A stretch of DNA of 62,353 bases, counting the filler, from Choristocarpus tenellus KU-1152 (Eukaryota > Protista > Phaeophyceae): the NCBI GenBank assembly GCA_964200185.2. It is 10 parts of 10 records of this genome, joined end to end, with 100 filler letters (N's around TTAATTAATTAA, not from the genome) between each part and the next. Parts side by side here need not be neighbours in the genome. Positions count along the whole stretch, not along the records: positions 40,135 to 62,353 come from CAXNAD020000297.1; 9 more parts are not named here. One strand, given 5' to 3'. The notes under the pieces were generated by a model. That model was given only the letters and a program-made list of their open reading frames with translations, made no database searches and was not told where the DNA came from. How positions within the stretch are numbered: position 1 is the stretch's first letter; each line of letters begins with the position of its first letter. Of this stretch, positions 40,190 through 62,353 are shown piece after piece. A program made the position numbers and the translations under genes.

Positions 40190-41879
40190 AGAAGGCGACT
40201 GAAGGAGATATTACTTGCTTTGTATGTGGGGAATCAGGTAACCAAAGATTTGAATGTTCACAAAGAAAGTTTCCTGCGCCAAGAGGTCTAGACTCTCAGA
40301 ACTTCCTCAGGAACAAGAATCGGGTAGGAGAAAGTGGTTGTGGTAATAAGGGAGCAAGAATGAAATCGGACGGATTGATGCAAGGAGATCAAGAATACAC
40401 TTGACCAAAAATACCAATGCGTCGCTGGATGTGAATGTGTTAGACACGCGATTAGGTGATGTTCATCAGGGGTTGGACAGGAAAGACGCTTCGGCCCAGA
40501 ACATTTCATTAACTGGAATATGGGGGCCATCTTGTCGAGGTTACCCACTCGGCAAGGGTCATAGGCATCCAGTTCCAAAGGAGATGGAGAATCGTGGTGC
40601 GGTAAAAGGGGAAGATGTTTATGTGGACTCGACAGGAGCGAACACAACGTCAGAGGAGCATGTTGTGGCATCTGATGACCTCGCCCTGGAGGAGGCTAGA
40701 GGGGTCGATTCGCACAGAATGAGACTGATGGTATCAACCTAACCTACGGTGGAGCTAAGATGTCGGTCTCACTCAAGATGGGAGTGAAGGAGATGTCGAT
40801 TGTGGAGGATCAATGTTTGACACCACTGCATCAGTAGAGGATGCTGTAGCGAAGTGTACGCTTCCCCCTAAGGGGGTTGAAGTGAATGCCATAGTCCCAG
40901 GGGGAATTGTTGGGGGGGAGGGACCCACCCCAAAGATGGCATCAGCAGTTATTGATCCAAGGGGTGATATGTCACAGCCGGTGAGTGTGAGGAAGAAAGT
41001 ACTGCAAAATGTGGATCCAATAAATGACCCTACAGTTGAACCAGGTCTGGGTGGGACTATGGATGAGTCCAGTCAAGATGCTGCTAGGAAAGATCTGCTA
41101 AGTCATGTGATACCAGGAAATGCAAGGGGGTTGGTAATGGAGTCAGAGGAATGTTCCTTGTGGAATGGGGCTGTGGACCAAGTAATGGGTATACACAACA
41201 AATATTCAAGGACCCAGTTTACTTACTCATTAAGCTGGGATAAGATTTTTGACCGGGGCAGATGGATGGGAAAGGGAGAGTGCAAACGTCCAAGGCGGGA
41301 CTAGTACGGATTGGAAAAGGCGGAAAGAGTGATTGCTTATTTGTTGAGGATCAGTAAGAGGGGCTTGATTTTTGGTGATTTCAGTTTTTATGTTGATGCA
41401 TCTAGGGACCAATTTGTTGACTATGCTGATGCAGACTATGCCAATTGTGAGATTTCAATATTTTCTGTGTCTGGTGGTGTGGTGATGTTTGGGGGTGCAT
41501 GTGTGAGCTGGGGTCTAGAATGCAGAATACTGTTACTTTATCTACCACTGAGGCTGAGTATATGTCGTTCTGTGATTTGGCCAAGGAGGTTATATTATTG
41601 CAGCAAGTCCAAATTTTTCTGGAGCGACCTATGCACAAGTATTGTGTATGATTGTTTAAAGACAATAGTGGGGCAATCAAGTTGACTGAGAAGACAGCTT
41701 CGCGGGGTAGGACAAAAAAGATAGATACTAGATATCGTTATTTTAGAAACTTGGCGAAGGAGGGGAAGGCACAGATTGTGTATGTAAATTCCGGTGAACA
41801 ACATGGAGATTTGTTCACGAAGGCTTTGAGTGGTAATGTGTTTGAATTCCACACTAGAACTATCATGCAATGTGAATAA
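40190..41879 (+). mobile_element. Ty1/copia LTR retrotransposon, degenerate (gag knuckle and RNase H)
   Basis: CFVCGESG knuckle at ~40216; YADADYA, SVSGGVVMFGGACVSW, LSTTEAEY, DNSGAIKL, RTKKIDTRYRYFR, QHGDLFTKAL; purine-rich tract AAGGGGTAG directly after the stop. Confidence 0.88.
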
Positions 41880-49712: not shown

Positions 49713-49801
49713 ACTTCCTTACACGATGGAACCAAAGCGAAGCCTGTGCATGGGGCAACTTCCTTAAACGATGGAACCACAGCGAAGCCTGTGCATGGGG
49801 C
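49713..49801 (-). repeat. 45-bp tandem duplication spanning the AdoMetDC stop codon
   Basis: ACTTCCTTA(C/A)ACGATGGAACCA(A/C)AGCGAAGCCTGTGCATGGGGC at 49713 and 49758; two mismatches. Confidence 0.95.
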
Positions 49802-52616
49802 TATTGTTAACATCTGTAGCCTTTTCCCTCAGATCCCAGGCACCCATTACACACACACAATCGCCTTCAACCACTGTGGAGCACACAGATGTGCGCACAA
49901 ATTGGCGTTTCCGTAGTTCTACCTGTGGATGTGAGGATATGAAGGTGCGATCAACAATTGTATCTGTAACTGAGCTAATTCTTTGCTTCAAATATTTCTA
50001 GAGCTAAAAAATACCTCTGTGCAAAGTTCTACTGAAGTGTTCAAACTCACATGCTCCATATCAAATGGATTTTCGGTTAGAGTGTTTAGACCCGCCTTAT
50101 CCGCAACCATTGTCAGCACCCATCTTTTGGGACGAAAAACATGAAGGACATTGTTGATGATAGATCTGTAGGAGGTTTAAAAGGGTGATGATAAAAGACG
50201 TGAGAATGAATTTTTACATGTTTAATTAAGTTATCTGGTGCCATTTCATTCATTGAACATTGCTGTAATACATACCTGTAGGACCTGAAAGGGTTGTTTG
50301 TCTCAAAGCTGGCATAACTGCATTTCTCCTCAGGTGTGACATGTATGGTGTAATAAGACTCATACTGGATCGCATTCATAGAGTACCTGTTTAGAGGATG
50401 TGATTTTGATGGTCGAAGATGTGAAGTAGATTAACAGTGGAAGTCTAGCATTGTTATGATAGAGATCAGGGCTTGCATTTTTTATCTTATCACTGTTTCA
50501 GCACCATTAAAAAATGATACCATGACTTGATTGTTATTTTAACACTCTGCCTTCTCTCACTATACAAAGTACTCAATTCAAGTATCACAATAGCACAAAA
50601 TATATGCAGAACAAGGTCATGCGTGTAACAATAGCCTCATACAAGGTTACTTACCCACAGGGATCAAATGCTATGTCATCCATCAGTGCTCCAGGAACAA
50701 GCTCTGAAATTCCACTCCTTTGAGTCATAACCCTGCCTGTTGGGCACACCTCCTTGTAAAATAGTTTTGCTACATCAGGGTGCATGTCAAACATCATCAT
50801 GTTTACCTGTATGATGAAGAGTTGAGGATTGAAGAGAATTAAAATTTATTTATTCAAAAGTAAAAATCTTTTTCTACAAGGATCACAAAATTAGGATGTT
50901 TAAAGATTAATTGCAGGAGATTGATATGTTACACCAGAAAAAAGCTTAAAATGAGTGGATTTCCAGTAGATTTTTGGTAGCACTTACCGTGCGATCTGTG
51001 GATGTGTAGTCTGGACGATCACACTTATCGGCCACATACACAAACCAATGATCACCAGTCACTGGTCCAAGCACATAACCTGGAGAAGACACAGTTTCGA
51101 GAGAGGGAACAAATACAACTCAGCTTTAATAGAACATGAGAAGATTTGAAGGCAAAAAGAGTATTGCACACCGATCAGTACTAAACCACTAACCTGCACC
51201 ATTCAATTGCTGACTGAGGTGACTGTGAGCTTTTAGATATTGCAATTCCTGGTGGAAGCTCGAGTGCGGGAAGAGCTGATCACCAGGAAACGTGAAATTC
51301 TTGCGGGAGTAACCTACCCACTCCAACACTAGACCCATCTCTTTTCCAGCTTCATGTAATAGAGTTGTTATGCAGCGAAGGAGGGTGGTCGTCCCACAAG
51401 TTTTTATGACAACCTGAAAATGAAGTGGAAATGACACAAAGAGAATATATTAACAAACTTTTTTGCCCGAAGTCATGGCAGTGTGATATCATGTTTTGCC
51501 AGTCCATGCAGGCCCTGTGGCAGTGCAAAGTCAACGATGGACAGTTACAGTAAAACAAGAGGTAATGTCTTACCTTGTGAGCATACACAAAAAGACTGCT
51601 TTCAGACAGCACGTATGCATCAAGGTGGTTGTTGGATATCTTGTGCAAGATGGTGCACTTGGCACGGCGACAGATGCGGTCAAGGCTCTGCCTTGTCAAA
51701 CCACGACATCCTAATAAATGCCCAATGCCTGGCTTGAAGCACACCTGACAATGTAGTGACAACAATTATGATCAACAAGAATATTATCTTGTCTTGGGAA
51801 AGAAAACATCTAATAGCCTGTTCCTCATAATTTGATCAGAGTTGCAGCATGTATTGCTGCAAAAATCTCTTTAGAAACTCCTCTGACCAAATTATAATAG
51901 CATTGACCCATTATTATCCTTTATCAAAATGATGCAGGGAAAACAGGAAGACACCTATCACACTTCAATAAAGCTCAGAATGTGATACCACACCTCTAGT
52001 GTCTTCTCTGGTCCCTCGAAACAGCCTGTATATTCTCTGTCATCTTCATCATCTTCATCCTGAGTTGGGAATGAGCACCAATCACGTATCATGTCATGCA
52101 ACCCTCAGTATGCTGTTGGAAATAAAGCAAAGTGACGCGTTTTGCACCCCTTTTGAAAGGGAGCACAACCTTGGGCAAGTCATAAATCACAAACTCCGAA
52201 GGCTAAACCACATCCATAACAGTCGCTAGCAACATTTCCATACCGGCACAACTACGACCCAGCTTGACTCCCTATAGAACCATATGACACTTGCTATCAA
52301 ACCTGGGCACTTGAACTATCTGACAAAGTCGCTATTATTTTCGACAATAAACAACCATCACCTCCATTTCATTATCTTCATCAGCGCCAGAATCGCTTAG
52401 ATCTGAGACCCCACCACGAGTTCCATCACTCGGGTGTGAGGACATAGGATCTCTACTATTCCCAACAGTGGATGTAGTAGGCAGTGCGTCAAACCAATCA
52501 CGAGTGATCGGTTCATCAGCACGTTCCATTTCACATCTTTGTGGTAGGCCTAGGCTCTGGGACTGAAAGAGTCCCCTGCTCCCTAACTCAGGGCTGGGTA
52601 AGCTTTCGGGGTGCAT
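49764..52616 (-). CDS. AMD1: S-adenosylmethionine decarboxylase proenzyme (AdoMetDC/SAMDC), 446 aa from the first in-frame AUG
   Basis: Exons 52616-52362, 52059-51994, 51744-51574, 51413-51194, 51079-50988, 50806-50655, 50386-50276, 50165-50051 and 49922-49764 have consistent phases and GT/AG (1341 nt). Motifs FEGPEKTLE, autocleavage site YVLSE|SSLFV, IKTCGTT, YSRKNF.FP..Q.FPH, FDPCGYSMN, TIHVTPE..SYASFE. Confidence 0.95.
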
Positions 52617-53296
52617 ATCTTCTGGACCTGTTCTTGAGTCCGATTCTTCTTACTCGGGCACGCCGAGATAAATTAGAGTCCCAAACAGGTGTCAGCTCGG
52701 CTCGAGAGGCTGTGGAACGGAGAAATGAAAGGGCAGTTGCAGAGTCATCCTGCGTACACTGAGTCAATATGATTTATTAAGTAGTGCATTTATGTTCCAA
52801 ATCCCCCACTACCTAGACTGGCGACAAGACCGATTGTGCAGTGTAAACAAAGAGAACAAGACCGAACAGACCAAGAGGAGTTATTGTACAGCATCCGCAG
52901 TCGGTAACGACACAATATTAACTACCTAGAGCATTGATTTTGATGGGATAGTGCCAGATCAGCCAAGGTTCAAGGGTCTCAGAACAACAGTGGAAACTTC
53001 CTGAAGCTGTAAACCATTTCTCTTTCACTACAACATTAGTACAAACTCACCTTGATCACTGGCCCAGAGCCAAGGTACATCCCGGTGGCGTCGACTAGAT
53101 CGTCAACCTCTAGTTCGAAGAGGATGGTGAGCGTGCGCATGAAGGGACGGGACCTCAAAAGAGGGAACGTCGGGCTGGTCTCCCTCCACCTGTCCTATTA
53201 CAACAGCGAATGTGGTAGACCGGTTTTCAACATATAATCCCCTGCAGCGATGCAGGTGCTTGGGTGCCAGTGATTTACTCACAGTTTCGAGGCCAT
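52588..53296 (-). CDS. Spliced upstream ORF (leader peptide, ~104 aa) of the AdoMetDC transcript
   Basis: Exons 53296-53283 (ATGGCCTCGAAACT|GTGAGT), 53189-53051 (CAG|..AAG|GTGAGT) and 52749-52588 (CGCAG|..CCC TGA) give a stop-free frame: MASKLWRETSPTFPLLRSRPFMRTLTILFELEVDDLVDATGMYLGSGPVIKDDSATALSFLRSTASRAELTPVWDSNLSRRARVRRIGLKNRSRRYAPRKLTQP*. Confidence 0.68.
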
Positions 53297-53503
53297 CTCT
53301 TTTAAAACATCAGCCTTATGGTAGTTGAGAGAAGTGAGTGAGTGGATAGGAGTGGGTTGTTGGGACTTCTTGGTTGTGAGACGAAATTTTACACAAACAA
53401 ATATTTGGTATGACGGTATATAGATTGCGACCTTATTATACCGTCAAACGTGGGATGTCCTCAACCCACACATCAATCACAGAAAGTAGATTGTCAAAGT
53501 ACC
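53297..53503. promoter_or_regulatory. Putative bidirectional promoter between the AdoMetDC leader and HYPK
   Basis: Only 207 bp separate the divergent start codons at 53296 (-) and 53504 (+); inferred from geometry only. Confidence 0.5.
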
Positions 53504-54387
53504 ATGAATACGGAAGAGGAACATAGTAATCTGGAGAAGGTCACTGATTTCGTGCATGAGAAAGAACTAGACAATGAAAGAACCATGAATGCCTTGTCTT
53601 CTTTGGCTGCACCAGCCCTTAATGCGGAGGAAGGGAAAGATGGGGAAAGGTAAGACCTTTGTGGCTTGAAACCCTTGCACTCTCTGTTGATGAGAGTTGG
53701 GCATATTCTTATCGTAGGTTTTCTTTACTGAGAATCACCATTGAATTATCTCGAGCCACCAATACCTGTTCTTAGGAGGGGAAGAGATCGCGCTTGGGAG
53801 CCTACGTCTCGTTGTCATCAACCTAGGAGTAATGTTGATACTACACCACGATCACCCACGTGAAAATGTTACCCCCAATCCCTTATCCTAAATATCCTAC
53901 CACAATTAGATTTCCTGGTACGTCCATCTCCCTCTGCAATGACTCGTCTCCTTGTGCACCTATACGGCATCCAAGATAGGCAAGGTAATCCCGAACGAGG
54001 TTTCCAATGCCAAGGATCCATCGTGGTCACCTTTGTGCATCATTGTGTCCATAGTTCAACAAAATCATGAGGTCAATGCTGTACGCAATCGAAGTTCTCA
54101 GGCACAAACAATTACCCAATCCTCTTCCCTTACACCGCAATGTGAGCCATTTCTAATGTTCATACTAACTTTATATCCACCATTCTCCCAAAATTTACTA
54201 TTAACCTCCATAGCCTCTCATCATTCCTATCACTAATAAACGCAGTGTCACCCACACCATCAAGTGGTCTAATGAAGATGTGAAGCTCATCATCCATGAA
54301 CTGGAAATTACTGAAGGGAAGGCAGAGACAGCACTGCTGCATTCTGAGGGAGATGTTGTAAAGGCATTAAGACAATTGGTCTGTTAG
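53504..54387 (+). CDS. HYPK: Huntingtin-interacting protein K (NatA/NAC-associated chaperone), 95 aa
   Basis: Exons 53504-53649 (AG|GTAAGA) and 54246-54387 (CGCAG|T). LEKVTDFVHEKELD plus UBA-like EDVKLIIHELEITEGKAETALLHSEGDVVKALRQLV match the HYPK pattern. Confidence 0.9.
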
Positions 54388-54408
54388 AAGGAGAGTATCA
54401 CACGTATA

Positions 54409-60049: not shown

Positions 60050-62305
60050 AAAAGTTGCAGAAAAAAGGTTTATGATTGGAGTACGTATACAGCAGTTGCA
60101 TAGAAGACCAAACAAATCGGGTGGATGATGAAAATATTAAAAAGGCTTTTGGTCAAAACCATCACCCCTCTTAAAACAGTCTTTATCTTGAACGAAACAT
60201 TGAGTAGAGCTTTGAGACATGCACTGAGTCGAGTATCAAGAGAAGGCTGTCTGACACCCAAGAAACTATTATCAAAGGCAATGCCTCCCATAGCATTGTT
60301 TTAAGGTCGTTGGATTTGAGTTACACATCCTGTGGAGATGAGTTCTGGAGCGTGCTGTAACATGGAGGTCCTACCGCCTCTCTTCAAACTGGAGAGAATA
60401 CCCAGTATTCACCTCAGCGCCTAGAATTAGTGGTAGCTTCCTATACTCGCCTGGATATATATTTTTTTCTACTTGGGTTTGTCGTCTTCATTCATTCGTC
60501 ATCTACGGGATTTTCTTCTCCTCGGCCTCGTCGTCTCCATGGGTGTGATGGCATCTGTGGCTCCAAGGGAACCATCATCCTTCTATGATCAAAAAAAGAG
60601 TGGCCTCTGATCGCCACATCGTCCGCCTATAGTCATAAAACGAGTGGTCTCTGACCACCATGGTCGAGACGTTGCCTAGGTAGTTAATTATTCTTCATTC
60701 ACCTACTCACATCCCTGTCCTCTTTTTCGTGCCACCTTACCCTTTATCTCCCAGGTTCACAGACATGACTGGCTCACAGCGTTCACAGAGAGTTGAGTTC
60801 GCCTCCGACCCACAGATTCGCCGGGTAATCGATGATTCGAAGAGATTCCAGCCCCGAACCACACCTCAAAAAAATCCTAGCCACAGCCATGCCCACACTA
60901 CTGAATGCCGAGGCAGCCGCAAAGAACATGTTCACTTTCAGCCTTCCACTCGTGATGGATCTCACCCCAGGTCAAGATCCCAAGACACACACTCTCATTG
61001 AGACGGACGGAGGACCAGAGAAGAACACAGAGGCCGTACCCATTCACCTAGACATCACCGTCGGACCAGAGGTTATTCTCCATGCAAGTCTGTATCACCC
61101 AGGTCATTTTGGAGGAATAGCCTGAGTACAGTACGTCGATCCTGTGAGGTTGAAGCGCAGTTGCATAAAGCAATTCATGAGTTGCATACACGCGCTAAGT
61201 CAAATGAGTCACAATCCGGTAGGTAGCAGTGGGACAGAACCTCTCGGAACCTTGACATGAGACATTGAAAGGTTCAAGACCAGGCTGGTGGCACGGGGTT
61301 TTTCCCAGCAATCTCCCAAGCTCGCCAGTACCATCTCCACTGATGCATTGGACTTGTATACCTTCCCTGGCCATCTGTTCGATATAGGCAGCGGTTGCAT
61401 CCGTCGCGGCGTTTTTTTTTTTCAATCCATAAACCCTCTTGTCTCGACTGGTCTCATCAACAAACACCTGAAAATATTTATGACCAGTGATGTCGGGTTG
61501 AAAAGGTCCCATCAAATCAATGTGCATTACCTCACCAGGCTGCTTGGGGGCCCTGCCACCCTGTTATAAGCTTAAAGCCTCGGATTTGCATTCCTTGCAG
61601 GTCTCACACGGCAGTTCCGACTCCGTAGTAGCGTCGGTTATCTCCAAAAGTCCACGTTTCTCGAGATGCTTGAATTGCTGATGGGTTGATGTGCCCCAAT
61701 ATCTTGTTCCAGAATGTCAGCCTCTGCTTTTGGTTGGCTCGTGCAACGCTGGCTCTTGATTCTTGTTCTGTGGTGATTATGGTTCCAGTTTGAGAACCCC
61801 GACTCTTGTAGGTATGTCTTGGGCGAATTCTTAGAGGTTCTCAGCTAACTTTCTTTTGTTTCTGAATCCATTAATTCTCCTCAATTGTGTCGTATACTTC
61901 CAGTACTCAATATAGAGAATGGTAGACCTGCCACCCATAGAACATCCTTCAGAACAACTCTTGATGGTTTGCCGTTCTAGTCTGTCACTATTAGAATCAT
62001 ATCCCCGGTTTCCTTCGCTTCCAATTTCACATTGTTAACAAAGGTACATATCCGTTTGGTGGCCCGAGTGCTTACGAGATCTTCACGATCGGGTGTAAGA
62101 TGTGCGTTTGCTCCATAGTCACACAATATCTCGACTTGTCTTCCACCAGAGGAGTTGAGCACCACATTTTTGTTAGCATCCTCGTCTGCTGTCAACTTGA
62201 AAGTGGAGAAGGAGCGCGCTTGGTTTCCGTCGACTCTGTTGCTACTCCCACCAGGTGGAGGTGGCGGAAATTTTCTCGCAAGTACCGTCCCAGGTGGACG
62301 TATTG
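60050..62305 (-). mobile_element. Ty1/copia retrotransposon, degenerate and rearranged
   Basis: Protease-like ILCDYGANAHLT, integrase HIDLMGPF..ITGHKYFQVFVDETSR, RNase H-like end (LTKSL); an RT piece RFKTRLVARGFSQQ lies on the opposite strand at ~61270-61312. Confidence 0.82.
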
Positions 62306-62353
62306 GGCTCAAAGTATCTAGGGGGGGGTGGCGGCTGTCCATTTGGGGTCAAT

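Follow-up and report, generated by a model that had tools for sequence, protein, structure and literature searches.

We describe a uORF (upstream open reading frame) in the 5' leader of the gene for S-adenosylmethionine decarboxylase (AdoMetDC) in a 62,353-nucleotide (nt) stretch of DNA, hereafter the window, from the assembly of Choristocarpus tenellus KU-1152 (GCA_964200185.2). The window joins 10 parts of 10 records end to end, the gene lies in the part from CAXNAD020000297.1 (positions 40,135 to 62,353), and all coordinates count along the whole window. Most probably, the AdoMetDC leader carries a 35-codon uORF with a conserved peptide that is assembled by splicing and would regulate translation of the enzyme in response to polyamines. 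AdoMetDC is a rate-limiting step in spermidine and spermine synthesis, and polyamine-sensing uORF peptides are textbook nascent-chain control. The anatomy of the leader is plain to see: the uORF exon is spliced to the AdoMetDC coding exon, and the hallmarks of the uORF are conserved.

Splicing of the leader and the 35-codon uORF

The downstream gene is AdoMetDC, as judged by Pfam SAM_decarbox matches to separate exon translations (E 1e-13 and 5.5e-20). Its coding sequence, on the minus strand, begins with ATG 52616, spans 446 codons and has its stop at 49766-49764, and a script check found all nine introns of the gene to be canonical GT..AG. All nine are missing from contigs of a sequencing run designated X3, one of three runs from the same organism and study, and the ends of the missing segments read CT..AC on the plus strand. 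We take X3 to be RNA-derived because its contigs lack the nine introns; the run itself carries no RNA label. The data are contigs, not reads, which omit rare variants, strand and transcript ends, and minor isoforms could escape them.

The sole leader junction in the X3 contigs joins 53051 to 52709, removing a 341-nt, phase 0 intron (52710..53050, minus strand, GTGAGT...CAG, sites checked). Once spliced, the leader encodes a 35-codon uORF from ATG 53140 to TGA 52694-52692. Its first part (53051..53140, minus strand) comprises 30 codons, the ATG and 29 more (MRTLTILFELEVDDLVDATGMYLGSGPVIK), forms an open frame inside an X3 contig and gives the peptide an acidic body (ELEVDDLVD.TGMYLG). The intron falls between codons 30 and 31, five codons ahead of the stop, and the second part (52692..52709, minus strand, frame checked) reads CCT CTC GAG CCG AGC TGA, that is, Pro-Leu-Glu-Pro-Ser-stop, followed by CA. 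The upstream ATG (uATG) stands in the weak context TTCATGC, with T at -3 and C at +4; the main AdoMetDC ATG has G at -3. The uORF ends short of the AdoMetDC ATG, with no overlap; by the frame check, a 75-nt spacer (52617..52691, minus strand) that contains an in-frame TAA separates the two ORFs. Readthrough of the uORF stop to give a fusion with AdoMetDC was considered and rejected: the two are in frame in the window, but the TAA lies between them and the spacers of two relatives measure 74 and 70 nt.

A preliminary description of the window had proposed a different uORF for this leader, a three-exon frame of 104 codons that starts at ATG 53296, extends in another frame to 29 nt beyond the AdoMetDC ATG and closes with an Arg-rich tail whose last residue is proline. 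The sequence features from which it was built are present on the minus strand (ATG 53296, donors at 53282 and 53050, CAG acceptors at 53190 and 52750, TGA at 52590-52588), both donors are consensus GTGAGT, a script joined the pieces of 14, 139 and 162 nt into a stop-free frame, and stops do close the AdoMetDC frame ahead of ATG 52616, as had been said. Such a construct is only mildly unusual. When a script was free to choose as many as two introns (donor GTGAGT or GTRAG, acceptor CAG), ORFs of 104 codons or more could be assembled from 4-12% of the other 900-nt segments of this part of the window and from 5-7% of leader shuffles. The X3 contigs use the donor at 53050, but they keep the first proposed intron (53282-53190) unspliced, 53051-53649 being a single unspliced contig piece, and the acceptor that they use is not 52750 but the CAG at 52712-52710, 40 nt downstream, with a better pyrimidine tract in front. 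This changes the frame. The Arg-rich tail is then out of frame, and in place of a 29-nt overlap the stop sits 75 nt ahead of the AdoMetDC ATG. What had been noted as a structured-looking core, MRTLTILFELEV, survives in the frame proposed for the second exon, but it starts at the true start, ATG 53140, and not from 53296. A rare isoform with the 52750 acceptor would be compatible with the X3 contigs; against this, the first 21 residues and the tail of the 104-codon peptide are not conserved, in a close relative (locus L002, below) a TAA stands in frame only two sense codons ahead of the ATG, and neither the peptide of the proposed third exon nor the window's first AdoMetDC coding exon, with which the tail overlaps, had a match in that locus. 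We therefore regard the 104-codon uORF, a frame that exists on paper, as very improbable indeed.

Database searches, made exon by exon with pieces of the 35-codon uORF and its surroundings, were negative. The window uORF piece had no Pfam-A match at E up to 10, and a longer piece had none at E up to 1; a homologous-protein search returned nothing for a 93-aa N-terminal ORF or for a 40-aa ORF around the first part of the uORF; and a metagenome scan with uORF peptide patterns yielded 176 pattern matches, with none confirmed.

Conservation of the peptide in close relatives

Genomic contigs of relatives, about 80% identical to the window in the enzyme, were located via one enzyme exon. At one of them, L002, an ORF upstream of the AdoMetDC exons matched the first part of the uORF with 76% identity (tblastn E 3.8e-11), and the locus reads ATG, 30 codons, GTGAGA, an intron, CAG, and then CCT CTC GAA CCT AGC TGA. 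The N-terminal exon of L002 in turn led to two more loci, L011 and L012. The whole uORF is kept in L002 and L011, with a GT..AG intron at the same codon position and an identical PLEPS-stop ending, and the 3' part of the uORF is kept in L012 together with the acceptor. Over the first part, 22 of 30 residues in L002 and 21 of 30 in L011 are identical to the window, and the full uORFs of the window and L002 share 27 of 35 residues (77%). The distance from the uORF stop to the main ATG is likewise short in all three loci (74 nt in L002, 70 nt in L011 and 74 nt in L012), the CA that follows the stop is invariant in the window and these relatives, and a 22-nt block at the uORF's 3' end is nearly invariant in the four sequences, differing at two synonymous sites.

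Between the window and L002, the uORF frame has a nonsynonymous divergence (dN) of 0.17 and a synonymous divergence (dS) of 1.31, giving dN/dS 0.13, whereas the other two frames give 1.5-2.0. Synonymous sites of the uORF are near saturation (proportion of differing synonymous sites, pS, 0.62), and the catalytic exons of AdoMetDC have a dN of 0.13 with dS saturated. No alignment was obtained between the window and the relative for the leader flanking the uORF. A dN/dS comparison had been proposed earlier for the 104-codon frame; the low ratio found here is that of the 35-codon uORF. The uORF peptide is under purifying selection.

Alternatively, the conserved block might serve at the level of DNA or RNA, as part of a promoter or first exon, as a splicing enhancer or as an RNA structure, with an incidental reading frame. 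The block does adjoin a splice donor and an acceptor, its 22-nt 3' end is nearly invariant in nucleotides, and environmental leaders (below) show no variation in the serine codon or in the base next to the stop, which suggests some constraint at the nucleotide level. Against such an element stand the pS of 0.62 beside a peptide 77% identical and the dN/dS of 0.13 in the uORF frame only; start, stop and Pro-Ser ending have all been retained, and in the window group the serine persists although its codon comes from a different family (AGC, not TCC). We consider a nucleotide-level element with an incidental frame improbable and favor conservation of the peptide.

The remaining close loci say little or nothing about the uORF. 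The upstream regions of L001, L003, L004 and L007 were too short or had long introns and are uninformative, and L005 and L008-L010 have no uORF like that of the window, L005 having instead a uORF of a hydrophobic type that ends in LT.

Pro-Ser-stop uORFs in environmental AdoMetDC leaders

A metagenome scan with the enzyme-exon alignment returned 80 AdoMetDC loci (L013-L092), many of them contigs of 1.5-2 kb that hold an intron-free AdoMetDC ORF with the leader ahead of it. Among 56 distinct metagenome or metatranscriptome AdoMetDC leaders, each at least 150 nt long, 19 have a uORF of 25-43 codons ending in Pro-Ser, mostly of the type ..DIVFVVPILLAVPSAKSYPS; examples are at L035 742-828, L026 140-223 and L061 127-228. 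Of the ORFs of at least 20 codons, 19 of 59 in sense orientation end in Pro-Ser, as against 0 of 60 in antisense. A median of 83 nt (37-259) separates these uORFs from the main ATG. Position -3 is a pyrimidine at 14 of the 19 uATGs and A at 15 of the 19 main ATGs; C follows the uATG at +4 in 15 of 19. The last sense codons are always CCN TCC, with TCC as the serine codon in 20/20; the stops are TGA (15) or TAG (5), and the next base is C in all 20, mostly as CA. A fixed serine codon together with a fixed base after the stop suggests a requirement at the nucleotide level during termination, besides that for the peptide. The window uORF falls within the ranges of this set with its 35 codons and 75-nt gap, and has the weak uATG, the Pro-Ser ending and TGA-CA, but uses AGC for serine.

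One small subgroup, L061 and L065, has uORFs of the type ..KVEDIVDSTFMHLKFLLIAQDIEPS. BLASTP aligned the window uORF with this subgroup at E 7e-5, and gave no alignment between L002 and L065. We also made a permutation comparison, ungapped, anchored at the stop and carried out piece by piece, with Met1 and the final Pro-Ser left out, which gave p-values against L061 and L065 of 1e-4 and 1e-3 for the window and of 6e-4 and 8e-3 for L002. In a tree of the enzyme, which is coarse because the 73-residue exon offers few columns, a split with 98% support separates the window, L001-L004, L007, L011, L061, L065 and P0025 from the loci with uORFs of the hydrophobic type; P0025 is a protein of a chrysophyte single-cell genome. 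On these sequence comparisons we take the window uORF to be a probable orthologue of the L061/L065 type; it may also be related to uORFs of the hydrophobic type and to that of plants.

Relation to known polyamine-responsive uORFs

The class to which the window uORF would belong is already known, since AdoMetDC uORFs with a penultimate proline have been reported from plants, algae and diatoms (Ivanov et al. 2010, PMC2811004). According to the same study, AdoMetDC uORFs always have the penultimate proline, except in vertebrates and sea squirts, and polyamine-responsive repression is established for AdoMetDC uORFs of the Pro-Ser-stop type (PMC2811004). Judged by sequence, the window uORF has the traits of the class: a position in the AdoMetDC 5' leader, a length of tens of codons, a penultimate proline, no overlap with the main ORF and a conserved peptide. 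It stands apart in that a conserved intron interrupts it, five codons ahead of the stop, and its acidic body contrasts with the hydrophobic IVFVVPILLAV type of most environmental relatives. The preliminary description had called its peptide lineage-specific and unlike the plant uORF. Neither view fits the spliced uORF, whose Pro-Ser-stop ending is that of the plant small uORF in PMC2811004 and whose hallmarks recur in environmental AdoMetDC leaders, in a class that this paper had reported. Its broader proposal, a regulatory uORF that gene finders would miss, holds for the conserved-peptide uORF of regulatory type in the leader; the 104-codon model is not supported.

With the plant small uORF, the window uORF shares the Pro-Ser-stop ending, a short distance to the main ATG and a likeness to a sequence-dependent class of repressor. 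The plant uORF, however, has 48-55 codons and is overlapped by a tiny uORF, whereas that of the window has 35 codons, and no tiny uORF overlapping the uORF start was found in the window or L002. Pfam has a family for the plant AdoMetDC leader; neither the window piece nor nine environmental uORFs matched any Pfam-A family with E up to 10. The mammalian MAGDIS peptide acts on the same gene, through a proposed stalling at termination that depends on the peptide and blocks scanning, but it is only 6 codons long, begins 14 nt from the cap, contains no proline and is unrelated in sequence to the window uORF. The latter is no hexapeptide near the cap: it comprises 35 codons, and the exon extends for at least 90 nt from its uATG to the donor. 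A third likeness is to the upstream conserved coding region (uCC) of the mRNAs for antizyme inhibitor and ornithine decarboxylase (ODC) homologues, likewise a leader element of the polyamine pathway with conserved C-terminal prolines, and in animals the uCC ends in Pro-Ser (PMC2811004). It differs in having a non-AUG start and in belonging to a different gene, whereas the window uORF starts with AUG.

From the analogous cases of the plant small uORF and of MAGDIS in mammals (PMC2811004), we infer that the window uORF is translated, that it arrests ribosomes and that the arrest depends on polyamines. Scanning ribosomes would first meet the uAUG in its weak context, where only a fraction of them would initiate. 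The C-terminal Pro-Ser, at a poor termination context (UGA-C), would then slow or arrest termination. High polyamine levels would strengthen the arrest, so that a stalled ribosome blocks later scanning ribosomes and synthesis of AdoMetDC falls; at low polyamine levels, leaky scanning and reinitiation across the short spacer would allow the enzyme to be made.

It could be argued that the uORF is translated and conserved but is no polyamine sensor, acting instead as a constitutive dampener or encoding a peptide with a function of its own. The body of the peptide is unlike both the plant and the hydrophobic environmental types. Nevertheless, the uORF sits in the leader of the same enzyme and has the Pro-Ser-stop and weak start of polyamine-repressed uORFs (PMC2811004), and we think this alternative unlikely. 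The conserved intron may itself be functional. The PLEPS-UGA ending arises only from the spliced leader, and splicing could act as a switch, a second one on top of polyamine-responsive translation. From the sequence, retention of the intron would end the uORF early within it, after 34 codons and with the residues VSLY, and use of the CAG at 52750 would shift translation into the long frame over the AdoMetDC AUG, that of the preliminary description. We put forward this second switch as an improbable reading.

Several observations weigh against the reading that the mature AdoMetDC mRNA has a polyamine-responsive uORF of the known class. Serine is encoded by AGC in the window as in L002, L011 and L012, unlike the TCC of the environmental set, and with serine codons that differ the shared Pro-Ser ending could be convergent. 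Profile searches linked the window uORF weakly or not at all to the environmental uORFs: a profile of 25 environmental uORFs misses the window's exon piece; hhalign joined the two small alignments in the same register at E 0.021; and in a phmmer search with L061 the window uORF ranked first of 1368 ORF segments, at E 0.48, with L002 and L011 third and fourth in a range of E 0.5-1.9. Pfam assigned no family to nine environmental uORFs (E up to 10) or to the window uORF. The same peptide was found in one independent close lineage only, L002, L011 and L012 being near-identical to each other (dS 0.08, L002 vs L011). The RNA origin of X3 is inferred from its spliced contigs and not from a label. 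Its contig merges with a divergent gene, described below, and ATG 53140 may thus lie outside the mature AdoMetDC mRNA. The uORF may also be preceded by as many as three small ORFs that begin with an ATG.

Despite these points, we still favor a polyamine-responsive uORF with a conserved peptide. The Pro-Ser-stop design is then conserved, with purifying selection clearly evident, in a protist lineage that has been little studied and whose nearest named relative, by a weak assignment, is a chrysophyte, and it survives both the splitting of the uORF by an intron and the divergence of the peptide body. What is new here is the member in this lineage, the intron split five codons before the stop, the divergent acidic body and the nucleotide invariants of the environmental leaders. 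The survey provides testable invariants, namely the Pro-Ser ending, the TCC serine codon, the stop followed by C and the weak uAUG, and these would point to the features that matter for arrest. There is also a consequence for annotation, in that gene finders miss the uORF and the splice model made on paper gave the wrong peptide.

The upstream leader, the AdoMetDC gene and its surroundings

Upstream of the uORF, the leader or promoter region (53141..53649, minus strand) is covered by an X3 contig that is continuous to 53649. TATA-like boxes lie near 53440-53410, and three small ORFs begin with an ATG on the minus strand, at 53310 (2 codons), at 53296 (5 codons, the start proposed for the 104-codon frame) and at 53233 (11 codons). 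They belong to the mRNA only if transcription begins upstream of them. The nearest upstream ATG ORF stops 57 nt short of ATG 53140, and in L002 no upstream ATG was seen from a TATA-like box to the uORF ATG.

On the plus strand, a divergent two-exon gene occupies 53504-53649 and 54246-54390, its second exon matching Pfam UBA_HYPK (E 4.4e-13); the GT..AG intron, 53650-54245, is removed in X3 contigs. The ATG of this gene is about 360 nt from that of the uORF. One X3 contig covers the first exons of both genes, and the two therefore have a shared bidirectional promoter region or overlapping 5' ends. A UBA_HYPK gene also lies upstream of AdoMetDC in L011 (439-714), about 4 kb off and on the same strand, so the neighborhood of the two genes is kept there in a different orientation.

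The nine coding exons of AdoMetDC are all on the minus strand. The first (52362..52616; junction 52362/52059 in X3 contigs, frame checked) encodes an 85-codon N-terminal extension that is poorly conserved and has an acidic run at its end, with the motif VSDLSDSG common to the window and L002. The remaining eight lie in the region 49764..52059, with all junctions present in X3 contigs: exons 2-5 at 52059-51994, 51744-51574, 51413-51194 and 51079-50988, and exons 6-9 at 50806-50655, 50386-50276, 50165-50051 and 49922-49764, the last including the stop. At position 52040, in the acidic run within coding exon 2, a second run, X2, has A and not T on the plus strand, a change from GAC (Asp) to GTC (Val) that was seen in one X2 contig of depth 8.5 and may be an allele or an error. 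Unspliced X3 contigs were also seen over the first AdoMetDC coding intron (52032-52390) and over the HYPK intron (53620-54273), at about one tenth of the depth of the spliced forms, and represent pre-mRNA or retained introns.

Both ends of the part of the window that holds the gene carry fragments of retrotransposon-like ORFs (61195-62342 and 41311-41685). Other end fragments look integrase-like or RNase H-like by eye and had no Pfam match at E up to 0.01, and one retrotransposon-like fragment has a weak Pfam match to Pol_BBD (E 0.0045).

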